A stretch of 64,000 nucleotides of DNA from Marsupella aquatica (taxonomy: Eukaryota > Plantae > Marchantiophyta), in contig OZ316898.1 in the NCBI GenBank assembly GCA_973895155.1, forward strand, positions 6,869,079 to 6,933,078. The letters are read 5' to 3'. This document shows, one piece after another, positions 15,166 through 43,269 of this stretch. The notes below the pieces were generated by a model that saw nothing but the letters and a program-made list of their open reading frames with translations, was not told the DNA's origin and searched no databases. Each line of letters begins with the position of its first letter. Position 1 is the first letter of the stretch. Both the position numbers and the translations under genes were made by a program.

Positions 15166-15297
15166 GCCCAGAGAGACATGACTTTGTGGTAGCTCACTTG
15201 AGTAGAGGCTGATGGGTCTTGGGTTCAACTATTGTGGTTGACTCTTCCCTTTCTGTGGGGTTCACAGATTTCCCCTTTAAAAAATAAAAAATAAAAA
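15166..15297 (+). mobile_element. tRNA-derived SINE, copy 1
   Basis: A-box-like TAGCTCACTTGAGTAGAG, B-box-like GGGTTCAACT and an A-rich tail. Homologous copies at 27852, 41274 and 54592. Confidence 0.7.
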
Positions 15298-30900: not shown

Positions 30901-33339
30901 ATCCAAAGTTGCATAGTCCAACATTATAAACCCATCCCATTCAGAGAAACCGTAGCTCCAGGCTAGACTAATCAGGACTTCTTTTGTGATATTCCGAATA
31001 TAATGCAGTCCATCCGGGGTGCAAGGATCCATGGGAGCACTTTGGAAAACCTAGAGGTCTATCCAGGTTTGTTCTTGTTGTAAGAGAATGTTTTTCATGG
31101 TGAAGAGGATATACGTTACTGAGGATAAGGTACAGGATAAAGAGGGTTAAAGTTTTCTGCAGTCGAGGACCGCAGATATTTCCCAAATCCATCATGACCT
31201 GCCGGTCCATCGAAGTCAATGGGACCGTAGGTCCACGTGCGTCCTAAATAATAGATCCCTTAATCACATGAATAAAAAGCGAGACGGTAAGGATGAAATA
31301 TTCCAAACAGCTTTTTGTAGCAGAGCAGACACTTTTTCATTGGCCTAAAATGCGTACCATCGGAAAAGCATACCGGCGACCTGGACGGTGCATTACCGTC
31401 CGGGACAAGAGACTCCGTGCATCACTACACGGGAGTACTTTAGTGCCATCCCCGTTTGCGAAATTTACTCTCGAAAATAACTTCAGGACTGTAGATTTTC
31501 GAAGGACTTCCAACTTATTTTTAGTTGGTTTGAAATTTGAATAGAATTATTTATTCACTCATTCATTGTGTCAAGCAGAATGGTCCCTAGATTGCGGTTC
31601 TCTAGTTACAATAAATTGCCAAAACTCAGCTCAACTTTGGCAAAATCTAGCTACTACGGTGTCTCAAACGTTGGATGGTCTTTGCGGTTACAGGAATCCT
31701 CTTTTGCCTAGCATGGTCTTCCTTTACTCAAGCAATGGCAGGACGGGACTAATGTGGCTGCACAACCCTGGCTGAAGAAATTGTTCTCTAGACATCGTTT
31801 GGAAGACCCTTTGTGTGCAAATCGCAGGTATGCTGGTTCTTGATCAGACCTCTAGCAAAGAATGACTACTATGTGCCACCAACCTCACAAGTGATTTGTA
31901 CTACTGTTTTTTTTCTTATCAATCCTCATATCCGTTCCAACACTATTCACACTAACGGAGATGAGAAATGGTCAATTCCCGCAGCCAAAAGTTAAGGAAC
32001 ACAAAATGGGCATATCATATGAGTTACCGGAGAGTCATCCACCGGAGGGTTAATGAGAGGCATTCAGTCATCAAGACCCAGGTTTGAGTAGGTTTTTTGT
32101 CTTGAAATTAACCAGTCTTACACCTAGTCAAGGACCCCATTAGCAAGGAACCGACCATATTGTTGTAAAGTAGTTATAGGGATCTAAGGGTCAGAAAGTC
32201 GTCTAGAATAATTCGATGAGTGATATTTTTTATATTTTCTCGGGCACAGCAAGCAAGGCGAAAACGAAAACACCTTGAACAGTATCCTGGCTACGGTGTT
32301 TGAAATGTTGCGGGGAGAAAATCTGCTAAAAAGTTGAACCGAGAGAAAATATCTGCGGAAAAGAGTCTGAAAAGAGAGGATTCGGAACTGGAAAGATAAA
32401 GGGAGAAAAACAGAATTACATAACTAGTAATGCGTAAAAATAATCAAATGGGTCACTACATAGTGTAATTATAATTTTTCTTCTCAAACACAACATTGGA
32501 AAAAATTGGAAATAACATAAGGTGAGAAATATTTGAAGCATTCAATAAAGAGTAAAAAAACTCAAAATATTCTACAGAGAAAATTCATTTTGAGATATTG
32601 GAGAAAGTAAAAGGTTTTACTCCAAATGATAGTTAGGGGAATAACAAAAATGGAGCATTTTGAAGGGAGAACAAATTTCACGGGAAAAATACCTTCTCCC
32701 GGAAAAGTCACCCCAAAAAACAATGCACATCCAGAAAAAATAACACACAAAATATACACCACCACCAAGGTTTTATTTTATTTTAGAGAACTAAAAAATG
32801 GTTTTCATTCTCAAGAGAGAAACATGCAATAGTTTTCAAGCGGGAGTTTTTTTTTTTTTTTGGGGGGGGGAAGTGATTCATTGAACAAACTACTGTACAC
32901 ATTGAAAAACCGATTATCCAATTTCTAAATAGGGAATAAATAGGAACTAATTAAAACTCATGCACTTAAATGCTTAACAAAATGCCCAGATGACTATATG
33001 AACTTAACTCATTTTATTAAAAAAATAACTTTTATTCTGGTAAGGATAATGTGGTCTATCGCTATCTATCTGTGTTTCTTGGAACCCCCTTCACATCAAA
33101 CCCTCATGATACTTTGTTCATACTACCCTGGTCCATTGACACTTTAATTCATAACTAATTGATAAATAAGTTAGTTTTGTAAACATTAACCTTAACCATA
33201 TTTTATGACTAACCATCACCATAGAAAAAAAGGCGTAACTAAGGCTTCAACATACTTGCTCCACAACAACAACAGTTCAAGGAAAGGTAGAACCACCAAA
33301 GTCAGGACCAATTTGCGATCACAAGGTCGGTCATGCTGT

Positions 33340-35620
33340 GTCTCTTAAAAAATACACAAAGAAACTATCAGCATTTATTATTTGGCAATTTCTTTCAAAG
33401 GGGTCCAGACTAGAGTAAATACCAACACTGTTTAGAAATACAAATAACTTGAACACATTTGGGTATCGCTCTATGGTGTAAATACACAAAAAAAATATGA
33501 CGATTTGTTTCTCAGCATTTTATTAAGACAATGGTCCACAGCTAGGGTAAATGGGAAGAGCACAACAAAAATGCAAAGGACTTGAATTGACCTGCACCAC
33601 CACACAATTGGCCAAAGAAATGTCAAACTGACAGCAAAGTGGGAACAAATTTGGAATCACCAAGGCCCACTAAATCTAGGGTGTAAAAAGTTATGTTAAT
33701 TTGCTTCTTGACATTTTTTTGAAAGAAAGATCCAAAGCTAAGGTAAATGGGAAGCTCATATTAACCAAATACAAATGACTTTCTCCCCTACACAACTGAC
33801 TTATGAAAAATGAAACCAATAAAGTGAGAGCACATTTCAAATCACAATATCAGGCTTAGCCTTAGGGGTAAATACACAAAGAAATCATGTGAATTTGTTT
33901 CTTGGCATTTTTCTTAGACAAGGCTCCAAAGTTAAGTGGGGTAAATGGAAGGATCATCATTCACCAAAATACAAAGAACGTGAACAAACTTGCTCCCTCA
34001 CATAGCTAACTAAGGAAAAATGAAATCAAGAACTGATTTTGATTCACATTATGAGCATGAGGTGTAAATGCAAAAAAAAAAACCATGAGCATTTGTTTCT
34101 TGGCATTTTTCTATGACAAAGGCCCAAAGTCAAGTAGGGTAAATGGGAGAACCATAACACAAATACCAAGGACTTAAATAAGCGAGCTCCATCCCACAAC
34201 TGCCCAAGAAAATGTGCAACCAGCAAAATAAAAGTGGGTTTGAGATCACCAAACCAGACTCAATCAAAGGTGTAAATAAATGGAGAAATTTACTTGTCAT
34301 GGTCTTCCCATTTAACCCTAACTTTGTATACTTGTCATGGTACATAACTGGCCAAGACCATGACAAGTAAATTTCTCCATTTATTGTATACTTGTCATGG
34401 TATTGTGTATACTTGTCATGGTACATAACTGGCCAAGAAAATGCTGAACCAGCAAAGTGAGAGTGGATTTGGAATGACCCAAGCCAGGCTCAGTCTACTA
34501 AGGGTGTAAATACTCAACAAAATTATGGGGATTTGTATCTTGGGATTTTTCTCAATCAAGGTCTAAAGGTAGGGTAAATGAGAAGATCATATCCAAAATA
34601 CAAAGGATGAGAACAAACTTGATCCACCACACAACTGACCAAGAAAATGTCAAACCAGCAATGTGACAGGCAAATTATGAATGAAAATACCATGCTTAGT
34701 CCAGGGTGTGAACTTGTGACAAAATTATGAGGATTTGACGTTTGGCATTTTGATACAAGGGCCTAAAGGACAATAAACTCTCCTGGAGCAAAATATAGAA
34801 ATGACTTGAATACTCTTGCACCACTACAGAAGTGACTTAAAAAAGGTGAAACCAACAAAATGAGAGCTTGTCCAATGACAACAATCATTGTAAATGGAGG
34901 GTGTACAACATAAACAAGTTATAAGGATCTGGTTTCTTCAGACAAGCTGGGTTGGGTCTAAAGCTAGGGTCACTGCGAGTAAATAACAAAAATACAACTT
35001 AGGACAATAAAGAAAATAGCTCCACCACACAAGTGAGCAAAGAAAGATGGAACCCACAAAGTGAGAGCAAAGTTGGAATCACCAGGTCAAGCTTGGTCCT
35101 GGGCTTAGTCTAGGGTGTAAATACACATTACATTAATGAAGATTTATTTCTTGACATTGTCTAAGTCAAGGGTCCAAAGGTAGGGTAAATGGGACTACCA
35201 TGACAAAAAATACAAAGGTAGATCACAAACTTGCTCCACCACCACCATTAGGAAAGATTTAACCTTCAAAGTGTAAGTGGATTTTGAATCACAATATTAA
35301 TTGGGCTCCGTCTATGCTATAAATACACAACAAAATATTGAGGATTTGTTCTTGGCATTTTTTTGAGACAAGCTAGTTAGGGTCCAAAGTTAGGGTAAAT
35401 AGGAGGACCATTATAACAAAATACAAAGGACTTGAATCAACTTGCCCCACTACAACTGGCCAAGGAGATTTCAAACCAACAATGTGAGAGTGGATTTGGA
35501 ATCAAAATACCAGGCATGCTTAGTCTTGGATGCAAATTTATGAAAAAAAATCAAGGATTTAATTATTGGCATTTTCAGACAAGGGTCCAAAGCTAGGTTA
35601 AATACTAGGATGAGAGCAAA
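33340..35620. repeat. Diverged tandem array of about 11 units of ~195 bp inside the transposon
   Basis: Core caagggtccaaagctagggtaaatggga recurs at ~33400, 33530, 33728, 33920, 34118, 34557, 34756, 34954, 35167, 35379 and 35580, with shared flanks (ggtgtaaatacaca, ttggcatttt, aaagtgagag..tttggaatcac). Confidence 0.9.
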
Positions 35621-35875
35621 ATTATGGGCTCAAAACTTGAACAAGTATCTCTTAAGCCAATAGACTAGAAAATAATTTCTTCGAATATTGCTAAAGCCTC
35701 AAGAAGAAGTGTTTGTGTCACTGGTAAACTATTATATTACCTCACATATTGTGTCAGTCATATAATCTGTAATGTTTGTTGCAAGGATCTTAAGGCCCAT
35801 AATCTACCATCTGACAAATTAGGTAGCCCTAATTCATTTTGTACATAGTCCTCCAAGTCCAATGAAGCGTCCATA

Positions 35876-37300
35876 CTATTTTGACACTATAGAAAGAAGA
35901 AGATGCATTCGCAATTTGTCTTTTGCAGTTGTGACTGTCACTTGGTTTCTTTCATATGCAATATCACGAATGTATTGTAGATTCTGCAAAAGAAATAAAA
36001 CATGAATAAGGGCATATAAACAAAAGTATTTCTTATATCATCATTTCATAATTCACATGAACATTAATAATAATACAAAACAATGCTTACTTCATCATTC
36101 AAATCGTTTATGCGATCTTCAAAGTTTCCACGATCATTGTTGTGATTCCAATAATCAATTCCCATTGGATCGATGATGTCATCTTCTTGTTCGATATCCA
36201 CCTGAGCTTCTTCGGCATAAGGTGGAGGCTGAATAATTCTAGCTTCTCTTTCTCGTGATTGAAATGCAAGTTCTGGAATATGTGATGGTCTCAACATACC
36301 TCCAGTCCGCACAGCTCTCACAGTATATGCATTCCATGTTAAAACCACATCATTTACAGCCTCTTGCAGTAAAGGAAGAATCACAGTAACCATACAATAT
36401 CTATGAAGTGGGATATCAATTTGTAAAAATCCTTCCACACATGATAAGTCATATAAAGTCTTCTTGAAGTGATTAGTTCCTTTTTGTTTCATGTAGTTCC
36501 AAAATGCCTCAATTCTCTGCCAAAACATATGATAGGATACAAATATAAGTACCTGCACAAAATTGATTTCAAATTTACAGAATTTCCAAGCTGCAATTGA
36601 TGACATGAAATATGAAATGAACCACTCTATATGTTTTAATCAGAAACATTACCTGATTATGAACAGAAGACCCCGTGCGAAAACAATTTGTGTTTGGTCT
36701 TGCTCTTTCAAGGTTTCTTCTTACCAAAACATGCTCTGTTGCATAATCAGAACGAATCATCAATGGATGACCAAATCTAAGTATGGTTGTCTTATATCCC
36801 ACATATAGAGTCTGCGCTTTCTTGTTCAATGCCACATGCATCCATGGAACAAAGTGTGTAGCCCCATCAATTGCACCATGAATTCTGAATCCCCATTGCG
36901 TCAATTTATCATATGCTGCATTCAATTTCCAAACAATCTATTAGTATTGAGGATCTATTCTAAAGTTAACTTCAAATTAAAAGTAGGAAAAATTTAGAAG
37001 AGACATAGATGTTCTATTTACAATCCATATGCCACAGATGCATTGGCTCAATTACATCATAAAATCTTCTTATGATGCATCTTCGTGCCCTTCCTTCAAG
37101 TACACCAGGAAGTAATGTGTCCAAAGCAATTCTGACAAGTGCTAGTGAGATTTTATAACCAGCCCTTTTTAAACGTGCTCTAATGAAACGTATTCCCCAA
37201 TCTTCAGCATATCATAAATAACAATGTAAAGTTTTTAAAATATTATTCAATTGTAGTGTTCCAAACTGTTTCAGTGGTTTATATCATTGCTTCAATTTTT
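35876..37300 (-). pseudogene. Spliced IS3/integrase-core (DDE) transposase, 5'-truncated with premature stops
   Basis: Exons ~37300-37022, 36915-36653, 36516-36091 and 35983-35876 are joined by GT-AG introns in phase. They give WGIRFIRARLKRAG...IIRRFYDV..PMHLWHMDSYDKLTQWGFRIHGAIDGAT...IRSDYATE...GSSVHNQRIEAFW...WNAY, with catalytic D (WHMD), D (RSD) and E (RIE). In-frame TGA at 37214-37212. Confidence 0.9.
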
Positions 37301-37348
37301 TTAATGTTATTGATTTTAACTAGGTTTTTACTTGTCATATTCCATCAG

Positions 37349-38415
37349 GTTCAACTTGTTGGTCAACTCATGTTTCTTCTCATATTGAAAAAGAAACAAG
37401 TTCATCGTCCAATCACAATGGCCACAATTGCTCATGCCATGGGTAAATGTCCCTCCCGTGAAGATCTTTACATGCAAGTGCAACAAGAAAAAACAAAACG
37501 ATCAATTTATATAGAAGATTTTTGAGCTGTTCGACCAACATGGTATGTAAATGTACCTAGTGGGAACCGTGCACTTTTTTGTTATACATTATTTCTATGA
37601 TATTATTGTCTTCTCATTTTATACTGTGATCTTAATTTTATAGGTAATGATCAGACTTTTTATTGCAGGTATGGTTTCATGCAGTCTTTGATTAATGCTC
37701 CAGAAGAAATTTTATAGGTAATGATCAGACTTTTTATTGCAGGTATGGTTTCATGCAGTCTTTGATTAATGCTCCAGAAGAATCAAGAGAGGGTCTCATT
37801 GACAGCATGGAGGATATAATGCCTGAATATTATTGCAGGGTTGTAACACTTGACCCAAACTGGTCAACTGAAGCATTTCAGAAAGCAACTATAAAATTTT
37901 ATGCAGATATCATATATGAGACTCTATTTGGAGCTTGCAGCATGGTTGGTGCACTACTTCATGACGGATTCTTCTCATTGGCGAAGACTGTGATGGCATC
38001 TCCCTTCATTAACGAGGCTGAAAAGAAGCTTGTGTTGACAAGTACATTTAAAGACGTCTCTGTGAAAGCCATGCAAGCATTTTTCAGTGCGCAACAAGGA
38101 ATCACAAATAGAGAGTTTTTGTCAAGGGTCAGATATTCAATAGATTTTCCACCAGCATTGAAAGACTTATTTCAAGAAGCAATTGGTCAATTTTCTGGTG
38201 TTGAAACCTATAGATTATATAGGTTTATTACAGATGAGAAATACAATGCAGGTACAATATGTCATGTGAATTTTAGCCCTAGTCGACCTTCGAGCTCTTT
38301 GCCTATTGCATCCACCTGTTCTAAACAAATTGATATTCCTGCATATCCAAATGTGGAAGTGATGCACTCCAAGTTGGTCATGGCTAGTTTCAACACCGCC
38401 TACGGCAAGTTATAA
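37349..38415 (+). pseudogene. HECT-domain E3 ubiquitin ligase-like gene (C-terminal exons only) carried by the transposon
   Basis: Exons 37349-37542 (VQLVGQLMFLLIL...DL; in-frame TGA at 37523-37525) and 37743-38415 splice in phase. The C-terminus LYRFITD...LPIASTCSKQIDIPAYPNVEVMHSKLVMASFNTAYGKL matches the HECT C-lobe LPxAxTC...LP.Y...KL..A...FG, with catalytic Cys at 38317-38319. Confidence 0.8.
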
Positions 38416-39038
38416 GGATTATTATCTTCTGATAAGATTCAACAAAGGTAATTTTTCAACCGTTGCATGTGTTAATTGTATTGTGGAAACTCGTATTGTT
38501 TTTTCTCAGTATCATTAATGTGAATATATTTCATGTTGTTTTTTCAGGATTTTCAGGTTATACACTCTACAAGAGACGATAGAAATGCAATGGCTTGGAA
38601 GGATCACAGAAGAAAACATTGTTGGATACCAGACAGCCTCCAATAGTTATTTTTTATCTAGCTTGCTAATCATCAAGAATTAGTATTTAAGGCAAAAATT
38701 ACTTATCTTTGAGTTTGGAGGCAACACAATGTACTTTGATTTTAAGTAATGTGATTGAGAGTTCATTTCAAAGTTGACAGAAATTGCTATTTATTAATCT
38801 ATCTTGTGTAATGGTTGGTAAAGACTTTGGACTGTTCAAACTTCACAATAATGTCTCTATCATAGCCTGGATGGAATTGATCATTTTGAATCCCAAAACT
38901 TCTACCAAAGAGGCAGTTCAAAATATTTTTGACACATTAGTAAATATATTAACGTTCCATTGAAAGTAGTGGCACAAGAGTGTTTTTGTAGAACAAATAA
39001 ACTGTCAGCTCTTAAACCTTGAGGAGTACTTGCAGTTT

Positions 39039-39235
39039 CATCATGATTCAACAAGAAAGGCACTTCTAAGGCCAATATTGTCCAAAAGACAAGCATTGCA
39101 GGATGCACAGACATAAACATTTTCATCATGATTCAACAAGAAAGACACTTTTAAGCCCAATACTATCCTGTGCTTGGATGCCCAATATTTTCCAATCCAA
39201 AAGACAAGCATTGAAGGATGCAGAGGTATAAAGGA
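39039..39235. repeat. Tandem duplication of ~90 bp inside the transposon
   Basis: catcatgattcaacaagaaag.cactt.taag.ccaata...tccaaaagacaagcattg.aggatgca occurs twice. Confidence 0.75.
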
Positions 39236-41273
39236 CTTGTAGACCTATATAATTAGTAACTTTAAGCATGTCAACATTTGGGGGTAATTGTTTGTTCAGC
39301 ATTCAACACCAGGCCTCTAGTTGCTCCATAACATCTCTAATTTTGCCATTGAGGGATGCACGATTTGTCCTTTGAGGATCCCACCCACCTCAGAATGATA
39401 TACTCCCTATCTCAATTAGAGTGGACTAATAAATTTCATAAAAATAGAAGGCAAGAAGGAGGTGCTTGTCTGTTGTGATCAAGGCCCATGTCCCAATGAT
39501 AGACGAGTCAAATCCATTGGGAAGAGTAAATCTATCAATGGAGGAGTTGAATCAACATGCAGACTTACTTGGCCATGGTTGGAACTTGTAGATATGGAGT
39601 AACAACATTCTTCCCAGATGACTAACCTAATCTTTCAGGTTGGCCTCTTCTTTCCTTGAAACTTAAAAGTATTGGCTGAGTAAAGTACAAATTTTCTCCC
39701 CATGTCTTCGAGCCAACAAAAAGTACAGTTGGACAGTTGGACATTTCTGGTTGGCTTGTAGATAAGGGGAGAAATTTTCACTTTACGGAACCGTACAGAG
39801 AAAAAACAACTATGTAAGGAGAGAAAAAAAACATTCACACTTTTCAAGATGATTTATTTTGGTCAACTTTTTTTGCTTCTTCATTGATTTGGTATATAAA
39901 TGTGTTTTACTCTCCAACTCTCTGATTGAATGTTATGTTTTGCTCTTTGAATTTTTTTTGTTCGGTGTAGGAAATATTTTGTGAGTTTTCACTCATGAGT
40001 AGAATTCTTGTGATTTCAAGGATTGAAAAGTTTCAAAATATTGTATACAAAAATGAAGGATGAAATAGTTTTTGAATTTCAAAAAGTGGAGAAAAAATAT
40101 CAATTTTGTTAGAATATTTTAAAAACATAATTCATGTGTGAATGATATTATGTATCACATGATAATGTTCAAAATGTTTTTGTTGAATTAATGAAGTGAG
40201 TGAGAGATTATTTCAAATTACTTCAAACGCGTGCAAATTACACTTTAGGGTATCCTACAAAATAAGTTGGGGTATTTGTATTTTTCTTGTGAAATATTGA
40301 ATATTTTCTCTCTTTAGACTCTTTTTCTGGAAAAAACTCCCCACAACATTTCGAACACCGTACCTGGCACCAAGGTACCAAGGTATACGGAGTTACGGAC
40401 TGGAAGACCTTGGAAGTTCATTGCGGCACGGCACAAGTACCGAGGCCGAACGAACTTACCTTAGCCGGTCACGAGGGGGACAAGTTGGACGGGAAGCGTG
40501 GGAGTACCACGGTTACCCGGGCGAAGGGGCGGACTGACGGAGGGACAAGTTAATCGATGTGGAGCACGAGACGGACGAGCCGCTCGAACGCCTTGCCCTG
40601 AGTACTCACGCACTGTATTTGCGTGAGAACTACCGGCTCATAAGAGGCCGGCAAAACGATTCAAAGTAGTTTGCAGTCGTCGGCCACAGAACTTGAGGAC
40701 TGCAATAATAAATTGTCCGACACATTGCCGGAATCTGCAGCTAGGACATCATGTTACAACGTCAGCTGGGGGCTTGGGAAGTACTCACCAAGGTACAAGT
40801 CGTTGAGCTAATACAACCTGTCAGAGTTGAAATTCATATAAGTATGACAGGAATTCACTCACCAGTCCATACATTTTTCAAGGGGTCACCCGTTACAAAT
40901 TTAAGGGTGAGGGGAACAGGGAACAGGAGGGAGAGGGTGGCTGCAACCAAAGCTCAGGTGGACGATCTACAATAGGTGTTGGTCAAATGCAAAACGTCAA
41001 TAACTCAGAAAATAAAAAATGATGGGCATAGATCCGTGCTGACTCCTAGGTAATACCTTTCAAACTATATGATCAAAACCAACAAAAATTTGGTGCATTT
41101 AAAAGCTCATTCTCGTCCCTTGGTGGGTCGTTACATGTTCAATATTAAGAGAGAAATCAAGCTTGCAAGTTCCCCATGGGAGGCTGGCACTAAAGACACT
41201 TTACAGAATCTTGTCTCCAGAATCAAAAATCAATTAACTGTTTCTGGAATCAAAAATCAAAAAATTGTTTTAT

Positions 41274-41386
41274 AAAGGAAAATCTGTGAAACCCCACAAA
41301 AAGGGAAGATTCAATCACAATACTTGAACCCAAGACCGATAGGTCTATACTCTAGTGAACTATCCCAAAGTCATGCCACTCTGGGC
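41274..41386 (-). mobile_element. tRNA-derived SINE, copy 3
   Basis: Reverse complement reads gcccagagtggcatgactttgggatagttcactagag...gtcttgggttcaag...gtggggtttcacagattttcctt. Confidence 0.7.
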
Positions 41387-43269
41387 AACTATGCTCTTTT
41401 TAATCTATTGTGTATAGCTATAAGGCCTGCTGAAATTGAACTCCAACCAACATTGGATAATTTTCTTACACAGGAGAGATTTACAACTAGCCATTACAGA
41501 AAAGTAGAACAACAACAAATCAAGTAGAAAGTTCGTCACTAGATAATGTCTTCCGTATACAAATGAACCAAGAAACCCAGTCCCTAAAAGTACACAGCCC
41601 TAGAATGAATGGTTTGGAATTGACTTTTTACATTTTGGTAGTGTGTTTGGTCATCATCCTGGTACATGGTACATGGGTTGGAACTGACTTTTTGTGGTTG
41701 GTTTTATGGGTTTTAGTCATCATTTCGAACCAAACCCAATAAGGTTGAAAGGCACGGTAAAACACCAGTGTCCTCACTTTCTTGTCAACCCCCTAATAAG
41801 TTATATCTTGTATTGTCTTCCCCCATTGTTACACTCATTCCTTCCTAGCGGTGGGTACTTATTGCCCTACTAAAAAACTCATGCACGACAAACAAATAGG
41901 CTCGCGAACTAAGCCGAGAGGGCGAACAAACAGAGGACCTTCCTCCCTCCGTCCGTTCTGTTCATGCTCTATCGAATCCATATCGAATCCGAGGCATATA
42001 CAGTGCGGAACTCCTTCGTGCCCTGTGCTGCAGTGCAGCTATGAAGTTGAGTAAGCTCAGCACTCATCATTACTCGAGTGGCAGATTTCATTTCATTTGG
42101 TTTGCTTTCGTCGTTTCTGTATCTGCTTCGAGGAGTCGAACGGTATAGGGGCCCACCACCATCCAGACCCACGGGCCCCGCTCCCGCCATCGGCGAATCA
42201 ACGGAGCAAAGACCGTTTTGCGCTAGAGATGTGTGGTGGGCGTCGCCCGATGCTAATCGACGGAGTAGGCAGCTTTGTGCTCGTACGCTGTGCGGTTGGC
42301 GTAGATCTAGCTCTGGCCAGCGGACAGCTAGCGCAGCCTACCGGAAGGACCGGCAGTTGACAGAGATCAGGACTAAAAGGGGCCGGGCCAAGGTACTTTA
42401 AGGCTTTTTGTTTTGCGCCAAGAGTGAACCAGACTAGGGTACTTTTTTTCTCTAGGTTTTTTGTTTTTCGCCGAAGGATACTCGGCCACAGTATTTTTCA
42501 TGTTTTTATCATCCAGGATCGTCGAACGTGAAGATGCTACGAAACTTTCTACTGTAATTTCCTTGTATCAGTTTTTTGACCCTAGATAAAGGATATGTGA
42601 TTCTGGCTACTGGGTATGTGCATAGGTGAGAAATTGGCTAATCCGACTCAAAATGCCTGACTACTATAGTGGCTTTGGTGACAATGCTCTTGGAATTTCT
42701 TAGTGAGGTGTGTTATTTTTGTAGCATAACTATGGCAAGATAATTAAACTGGAATTTCAAAATATAATGAAATGGATAAATGTGGCAAAATCAAACACAA
42801 ATTTACTCTATTTGTGTGACAGTGTGAATTTGCTAGATTTATCCTAAATATTAAGTTCTATTTTGAAAATCTTGGCATAGTCTTTCCAGTCTAGACTTGT
42901 CACTCTCAATATTTGGGCAAGTGTACATCTAATTTGCATTTTGTTACCGTATTTAGTAAACAATAGGGTAATGTTTGCCGAAGGTGAGCAAACATTTTCA
43001 CCGAAATGAAATTTGGTGAATTTCGCCAATAAACAAATGGCCCGACTCGGCAGTCAAGGCTCGAGTAAGGGAATGCATCCCTGGGCAGGCCTCTTTTGGG
43101 GAAAGAATATCATGCTGCATGGCGATCGGGTGTCCTCCACGCCGCAACCTGGCGTCTAGTGCAACAAAAATAGCAAAGACTTACACGATTGACGTTAACT
43201 AAGATTTCATAAATACTTCACCACACTACTACTACTGTACTCCCCGTCTCACGAGTCCCGCCTCCTTGC

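Follow-up and report, generated by a model that had tools for sequence, protein, structure and literature searches.

A probable internally deleted IS3EU/GingerRoot DNA transposon carrying part of a HECT gene in Marsupella aquatica

A 64,000-nucleotide stretch of the Marsupella aquatica contig OZ316898.1, the whole of which is referred to here as the window, contains an 8,071-bp element, at positions 32292-40362, with terminal inverted repeats (TIRs) and a flanking target-site duplication (TSD). Within the element a gene for an integrase-type DDE transposase on the minus strand faces away from a divergent gene of the HECT E3 ubiquitin ligase type on the plus strand, with a decayed repeat array on the transposase side. 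The element appears to be a DNA transposon of the IS3EU/GingerRoot type from which an internal part has probably been lost. The role, if any, of the HECT gene in the life of the transposon is the principal question considered below.

Termini and class of the element

The features that delimit the element are as follows.

32286-32291, no strand: left TSD, CCTGGC, read directly and the same as 40363-40368
32292-32317, plus strand: left TIR, starting TACGG, paired with the right TIR at 24/26 positions
40337-40362, minus strand: right TIR, ending CCGTA, paired with the left TIR at 24/26 positions
40363-40368, no strand: right TSD, CCTGGC, read directly

The TIR, TACGGTGTTYGAAATGTTG, is 26 bp in length and complementary at 24/26 positions, with imperfect complementarity extending to approximately 60 bp. 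A search of the window with this TIR, allowing <=3 mismatches, returned these two sites only, against 0.00 expected from shuffles, and the 6-bp TSD is perfect, the chance of a perfect 6-mer match being 1/4096 for the one copy scored. Neither a second copy of the element nor a paralogous empty site is present in the window. The original prediction, made from the letters alone, had proposed complete termini with 24/26-identical TIRs and a perfect 6-bp TSD, and both proposals are borne out.

The ends, TACGG...CCGTA, fit both the general TA..TA form and the more restricted TAYGG..CCRTA form, and the repeats at the termini are inverted, rather than being long terminal repeats (LTRs). Two open reading frame (ORF) pieces of the transposase match the Pfam family rva_4 (PF24764, "integrase core domain") at 1.2e-14 and 2.9e-6; by contrast there is no match of the transposase ORF pieces to Pfam rve at E<=1. 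Because a 6-bp TSD and TA..TA ends are combined with an rve-clan DDE domain matching rva_4 and not rve, the element can be assigned to IS3EU/GingerRoot, in agreement with the superfamily originally proposed, and is, as judged from these sequence features, a genuine and precisely bounded transposon of that type. The rve-clan fold is common to Ginger1, Ginger2/TDD and LTR-retrotransposon integrases, and short TSDs are also made by Ginger2 (PMC6839031), so that derivation of the element from one of these groups, or from an integrase remnant, has to be considered. Such an origin is, however, very improbable given that the match is to rva_4 only, that TIRs are present and LTRs are not, and that TACGG..CCGTA ends with a 6-bp TSD are as in IS3EU (PMC12730594, PMC10045372). 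By analogy with the IS3EU/GingerRoot family, the integrase-fold DDE transposase would bind the TACGG-ended TIRs and excise the element, with insertion occurring by a 6-bp staggered cut.

IS3EU has been represented in Repbase since 2013, its complete families ending in TA..TA and usually having 6-bp TSDs (PMC10045372). GingerRoot was described by Cerbin, Wai, VanBuren and Jiang in 2019 from Selaginella lepidophylla; among plants it was detected in bryophytes and lycophytes, with further occurrence in animals, and it is characterised by a 6-bp TSD, TA..TA ends and a mean length of 8.6-8.9 kb (PMC6839031). A later analysis by Kojima and Bao (2023) placed the two in a single lineage at 99% bootstrap (PMC10045372). 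The suggestion in the original prediction of an undescribed plant lineage thus has to be given up, GingerRoot having been reported from Selaginella, bryophytes and lycophytes in 2019 (PMC6839031) and joined to IS3EU in 2023 (PMC10045372).

The element shares with GingerRoot the 6-bp TSD, the TA..TA ends, an integrase-related DDE domain, the lack of LTRs, a non-seed land-plant host and the presence of extra gene sequence; its length, 8.07 kb, compares with the GingerRoot mean given above. It differs in that the TIRs of GingerRoot are 100-150 bp, compared with 26 bp here (imperfect to approximately 60 bp), and in that neither a HECT gene nor an internal 200-bp array has been described for GingerRoot, the passenger DNA of which was read as host-gene fragments. 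The likeness to IS3EU, in the 6-bp TSD and TA..TA ends, extends in the case of the rust-fungus elements to the TAYGG..CCRTA form, which is the same as that observed here; besides the transposase these elements encode TET/JBP and an alpha-kinase, the alpha-kinase gene running opposite to the transposase (PMC12730594), as does the second gene in the element studied here. What sets the present element apart from IS3EU is that its accessory gene is of the HECT type, that spliceosomal introns interrupt its genes and that it resides in a bryophyte-type plant. Similarities are also apparent with Styx/REP9 of Zymoseptoria, which is IS3EU-related, has a 36-bp TIR and a 6-bp TSD, encodes several genes besides the integrase, and has defective copies that are mobilised by intact ones (PMC8232023, PMC10853768). 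The Styx/REP9 passengers, however, are DUF3716 and unknown proteins, and that system is fungal, is shaped by repeat-induced point mutation and has experimentally demonstrated activity.

The transposase gene and the internal junction

The transposase gene occupies the central part of the element and ends abruptly at its 5' side.

36064-36516, minus strand: exon C, 150 codons plus stop, starting RIEAFW with the catalytic E and a K at E+7 (rva_4 profile positions 102-172; tblastn to homologues)
36517-36652, minus strand: intron 2, GTAATG..GGCAG, splitting SVHNQ/RIE (break point shared by L006 and L007)
36653-36915, minus strand: exon B, the core, with the second catalytic D in IRSDYATEH (rva_4, 1.2e-14)
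36916-37021, minus strand: intron 1, GTAAAT..TGCAG (L007 breaks likewise after WHMD; other copies have a GTAAGT donor)
37022-37211, minus strand (whole codons 37208-37022): exon A remnant, ending LWHMD with the first catalytic D and having no start codon (N-terminal profile positions 176-236)
37212-37213, no strand: probable internal-deletion junction at which two truncated genes abut (contig run-ons in sequencing run X1; frame analysis)

A codon-by-codon reading of the minus strand gives coding exons at 37208-37022, 36915-36653 and 36516-36067. Both introns are of the GT..AG type and split conserved motifs exactly (WHMD/S-YDKL and SVHNQ/RIE), such that the first splice restores the family spacing W-H-x-D-x-x-x-K-L and the second restores the catalytic glutamate motif. 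The same break points are observed in the closest relatives, L006 (61% identity) and L007 (52%), whereas in L001, which is more distantly related, no intron follows HNQ. The catalytic triad is intact, comprising D (WHMD), D (RSD) and E (QRIE) with 56 and 33 residues in between, and a K is located at E+7; this spacing, together with the K, is the integrase/IS3 pattern. The exons were searched singly and were joined only for codon numbering.

A HMMER search of 1.84 billion representative proteins with exon B identified 555 homologues at E<=0.001, the best at 61% identity. Those with a named host are from basidiomycete and chytrid fungi (including Pucciniomycotina), the amphioxus Branchiostoma and the whitefly Bemisia tabaci; Bemisia tabaci and Pucciniomycotina are groups from which GingerRoot or IS3EU have been reported (PMC6839031, PMC12730594). 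Full-length homologues comprise approximately 470-540 residues, including a helix-turn-helix-like N-terminal region with no obvious HHCC motif, and the window encodes the equivalent of residues ~175-415 only. Consistent with this, a profile of the N-terminal region (236 positions, built from 22 proteins) matches the window at positions 176-236, i.e. exon A only, and its positions 1-175 have no match anywhere in the 64 kb. About the first third of the protein, the N-terminal ~175 residues, is therefore not encoded here, nor is there a start codon; the complete ORF with a start codon and an N-terminal DNA-binding region that an autonomous copy would have is missing. The intron-containing IS3/integrase-type DDE gene that was originally proposed is thus supported by the rva_4 match and by two introns that interrupt conserved motifs, but the gene is incomplete.

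The transposase frame stays open as far as 37213 and is closed by a TGA lying across the junction; on the other side, 37213-37348 is predicted to be the end of a HECT intron. Each gene is thus truncated at its 5' side, and the two meet at 37212/37213. Additional evidence comes from public sequencing runs, six of which, from four studies and with three organism labels, contain all or parts of the stretch; the contigs of four runs were compared over 36000-41999. In run X1, two contigs, one from either side, match the window to 37213 and 37212 and then continue with 195 and 149 letters, respectively, that are not on the window, which suggests that most other copies have additional DNA at this point. 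Since both 5' truncations share one point, and since other copies are longer there, one internal deletion is the simplest explanation, and the window copy is probably an internal-deletion derivative of a larger element.

The contigs also point to a repeated unit. The depth of contigs over the element exceeds that over the flank by approximately 4-fold (66 vs 16 in X1, 267 vs 60 in X3), which suggests several near-identical copies, contig k-mer depth not being a true copy number. In X1 the single-copy contig of the flank starts at 40333, 30 nucleotides (k-1) inside the terminus at 40362; a contig graph with k=31 (Logan) gives such a start when a repeat ends exactly at that position. The high-depth contigs diverge from the window by approximately 1-2%. 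Among the differences listed, there are seven substitutions in 242 nucleotides of intron compared with 10 in 900 nucleotides of exon, half of the exonic ones being silent, and both indels (after 36607 and 36635) are in intron 2; these counts are indicative only. A T>C difference at 37017 changes the intron 1 donor from GTAAAT to GTAAGT in other copies. In run X6 (organism C), scattered pieces of 70-180 nucleotides, 96-100% identical to 36131-39141 and with unlike sequence beyond each, were observed. One of these spans an exon/intron border, and is therefore from DNA rather than spliced RNA; the pieces could represent a related element or low-coverage carry-over.

Within a larger parental element, one deletion at 37212/37213 would have cost both head-to-head genes their 5' parts: the transposase would have lost its N-terminal ~175 residues, corresponding to the helix-turn-helix region in homologues, and the HECT gene its front. 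The converse proposal is that the window copy, with a short transposase and a mini-HECT protein, has the normal structure of the family, and that the extra sequence elsewhere is a later nested insertion. In its favour, P0176, a HECT relative encoded by L004, was called as a 279-residue protein starting at the same MFLLILKK motif as is present here. We regard this proposal as improbable, however, because the ~500-residue homologues and L001, which is the nearest relative on a long contig, have an N-terminal region that the window lacks, and because the transposase has no start codon in the window and the stop codon spans the junction. In addition, L004 itself has another upstream exon in common with L005 and L008, and the sequences overlap at the junction by two nucleotides, TC, which is unlike a typical TSD. 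The window copy is defective and unable to move by itself; for any movement, fuller copies would have to provide the transposase in trans.

The HECT gene: accessory gene or captured fragment

On the plus strand, to the right of the junction, the HECT gene is composed of two exons.

37349-37542, plus strand: HECT exon 1, with an acceptor-like CAG at 37346-37348, the first ATG at 37370 and an in-frame TGA at 37523-37525 (protein identity 67% to L005, 58% to L004)
37543-37742, plus strand: HECT intron, GTATGT..TTGCAG, with the first unit of a 74-bp duplication adding to its length (matched in position by an intron of L005)
37634-37781, plus strand: perfect 74-bp tandem duplication over the border of the intron and exon 2, making a second acceptor (repeat analysis)
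37743-38415, plus strand: HECT exon 2, encoding the remaining N-lobe and a C-lobe whose catalytic cysteine lies in LPIASTCSK (PF00632)

The ORF at 37696-38412 matches the Pfam HECT family (PF00632) at 4.4e-9 (37 bits), over profile positions 162-299 of 306. The gene model (from the ATG, 37370-37542 plus 37743-38415) has 281 codons, codon 52 being TGA, and lies in the opposite orientation to the transposase. The C-lobe with its catalytic cysteine is present; a complete N-lobe and an uninterrupted frame are not. In other copies 37523 is C, such that the codon is CGA (Arg) rather than TGA, and the 74-bp duplication is missing from the X3 and X5 contigs (joint 37657>37731). To the truncation of the HECT gene are added, in the window copy, the CGA>TGA nonsense change and the duplication at the splice acceptor. 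A divergent, intron-containing HECT gene, as originally proposed, is supported by the PF00632 match and by the one intron, but it is incomplete and has a stop in frame.

Searches of 5.8 billion proteins identified only six HECT relatives, and an exact look-up of the window HECT ORF showed that it is not on record. The LPRASTCS sequence of P0176 aligns with the catalytic-cysteine motif, LPESSTCS, of HECTD3. The AlphaFold model of P0176 is mediocre (predicted local distance difference test score 64), and its top Foldseek matches are all HECT domains at E ~0.02, a result taken solely as agreement with Pfam. The protein resembles the HECT E3 ligases, of which the closest solved structure is the HECTD3 C-lobe (9r85), in that its C-lobe has the catalytic cysteine within LPxxSTCS and its C-terminal tail is hydrophobic; the similarity is, however, very low (37 bits to Pfam, E=7.5e-5 to HECTD3), and both the start of the N-lobe and an L008-type N-terminal extension are missing.

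The relatives are informative as to what has been lost. Further upstream, L008 and L005 have additional exons, among them one for a HECT start of the IDAGG type, together with ~200 or more residues of N-terminal extension, and the upstream exons of L008, L005 and L004 have no counterpart in the window, which therefore holds only the 3' part of a longer HECT gene. The relatives at L008 1-2253, L005 1262-4119 and L004 207-1410 are all much longer, multi-exon genes with a complete HECT start, and the N-terminal extension has a weak, sub-threshold match to DUF5395.

Estimates of dN/dS for the HECT gene are ~0.13 (L004 vs L008) and ~0.18 (window vs L005), and those for the transposase core are 0.17-0.25; dS is near saturation, so these values are rough. 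On these values the HECT family is under purifying selection of a strength like that on the transposase. The low scores (37 bits on Pfam HECT), the finding of just six relatives and the frameshifted state of L005 make the gene unlike a core host gene. The closest transposase relative, L006 (61% identity), and a HECT relative, L004 (41% identity), are from the same Joint Genome Institute sample, 3300081567, on separate short contigs, a circumstance that counts in favour of an accessory gene.

Capture of host-gene fragments (Pack-type transduplication) would offer a different account, in which the element is a non-autonomous GingerRoot carrying debris with no role in transposition. The precedent is substantial, as 28.6% of Selaginella GingerRoot elements carry gene fragments with introns, and capture often accompanies loss of transposase sequence (PMC6839031); moreover, the window contains no more than the 3' part of the HECT gene, and the longer HECT genes are on contigs without a transposase. 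A Pack-type passenger would, however, be a fragment without coding constraint, and the rough between-lineage dN/dS of ~0.13-0.18, at a level similar to that of the transposase, is not of that kind. Furthermore, the HECT family is rare and very divergent from canonical HECT domains, its members elsewhere are also decaying (L005 has frameshifts), and the truncation point shared by the two genes is more simply the product of one deletion. Capture is thus the less probable account, and we consider it unlikely, though not negligible.

That the HECT gene is a working accessory gene of the transposon lineage, rather than debris, seems to us slightly better than an even proposition; in that role its product would form a thioester and, as an E3 ligase, ubiquitinate a protein of the host or of the element. 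A more specific possibility, put forward tentatively and with rather less assurance, is that it represents a standing, fast-evolving HECT E3 ligase of a bryophyte IS3EU/GingerRoot lineage, arranged head to head with the transposase and ubiquitinating either a host factor, for example a silencing or repair protein, or the transposase itself. The ligase would then act in conflict between element and host.

Overall, it is likely that the element is a defective, internally deleted IS3EU/GingerRoot copy, with the HECT gene as a likely accessory gene. Several considerations weigh against this interpretation. The class placement is by ends, TSD, Pfam and the hosts of homologues; the number of copies is approached through contig k-mer depth; and the extra sequence of the other copies could be a nested insertion rather than the missing parts of the two genes. 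None of the six runs with the stretch is on record as RNA. Among the loci examined, no contig outside this genome has both HECT and transposase: L004, L005 and L008 have HECT without transposase, and L001-L003, L009 and L010-L014 have transposase without HECT. Host-gene fragment capture, being known for GingerRoot (PMC6839031), would also explain a 3' piece of a HECT gene. Thus, with respect to the two-gene transposase and ubiquitin-ligase system put forward in the original prediction, the location of both genes inside the repeated unit, and the purifying selection on HECT, are in its favour, whereas the 5' truncation of both genes and the lack of linkage on the contigs examined elsewhere are not. 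Scans of metagenomes with the HECT alignment and with a degenerate TIR gave no match, and TIR-like sequences were not found in the related loci.

Non-coding regions and implications

The remainder of the element is apparently non-coding.

32318-33269, no strand: non-coding sequence next to the left TIR, some short motifs of which reappear in inverse orientation close to the right end (no ORF with a family match)
33270-35610 (approximate), no strand: decayed array of ~11 units of ~200 bp, A-rich on the plus strand (repeat families, unit BLAST, skew)
34275-34385, no strand: perfect 32-nucleotide hairpin with a 47-nucleotide loop, interrupting the array (100% complementary)
38416-40336, no strand: right non-coding region, within which short repeats of ~85 bp lie around 39030-39230 (no family match)

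The internal repeat array that had been predicted is present, as ~11 units of ~200 bp at roughly 33270-35610. The units are 68-77% identical, are spaced at ~195-215 bp and have an AT skew of 0.16-0.17; Tandem Repeats Finder makes no call on the array, because it is too decayed. An IS3EU-like element of Hydractinia has an internal 182-bp tandem repeat (PMC11934779), which the ~200-bp array recalls. The hairpin at 34275-34385, beyond which GTATACTTGTCATGGTA recurs as short direct repeats, is possibly an insertion of a small hairpin. The sequence beyond the HECT stop codon has no similarity to the relatives.

Just to the right of the element, at 41268-41337, contig depth rises to ~2,455 in X1, compared with 16 in the surroundings, and to ~12,275 in X3. 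This segment has many differing loose ends on both sides and an 84% identical copy at 15190-15287, and is probably a very high-copy repeat resembling a miniature inverted-repeat transposable element or a short interspersed nuclear element.

The element is of a known kind in a known host group, and the new part is the HECT gene that it carries. With a host of bryophyte type, the published range of the superfamily is unchanged or at most extended a little. No paper mentioning both IS3EU and HECT was present in the literature searched. A statement that IS3EU encodes two proteins, attributed in PMC8232023 to a 2019 review by Kojima, could bear on the novelty of the HECT gene. IS3EU/GingerRoot is among the least studied of the DNA-transposon superfamilies, the published plant data consisting of one clubmoss genome and read-level detection in mosses, and the present element provides a precisely bounded example of a bryophyte type, with defined intron positions, ends and TSD. 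If the HECT piece is captured debris, the element is an ordinary defective GingerRoot copy. The accessory genes of IS3EU, i.e. those for a TET/JBP dioxygenase and an alpha-kinase, point to tools aimed at host control systems; if the HECT gene does encode a conserved ligase of the lineage, the ubiquitin pathway would join the set of transposon-carried tools directed against host control.

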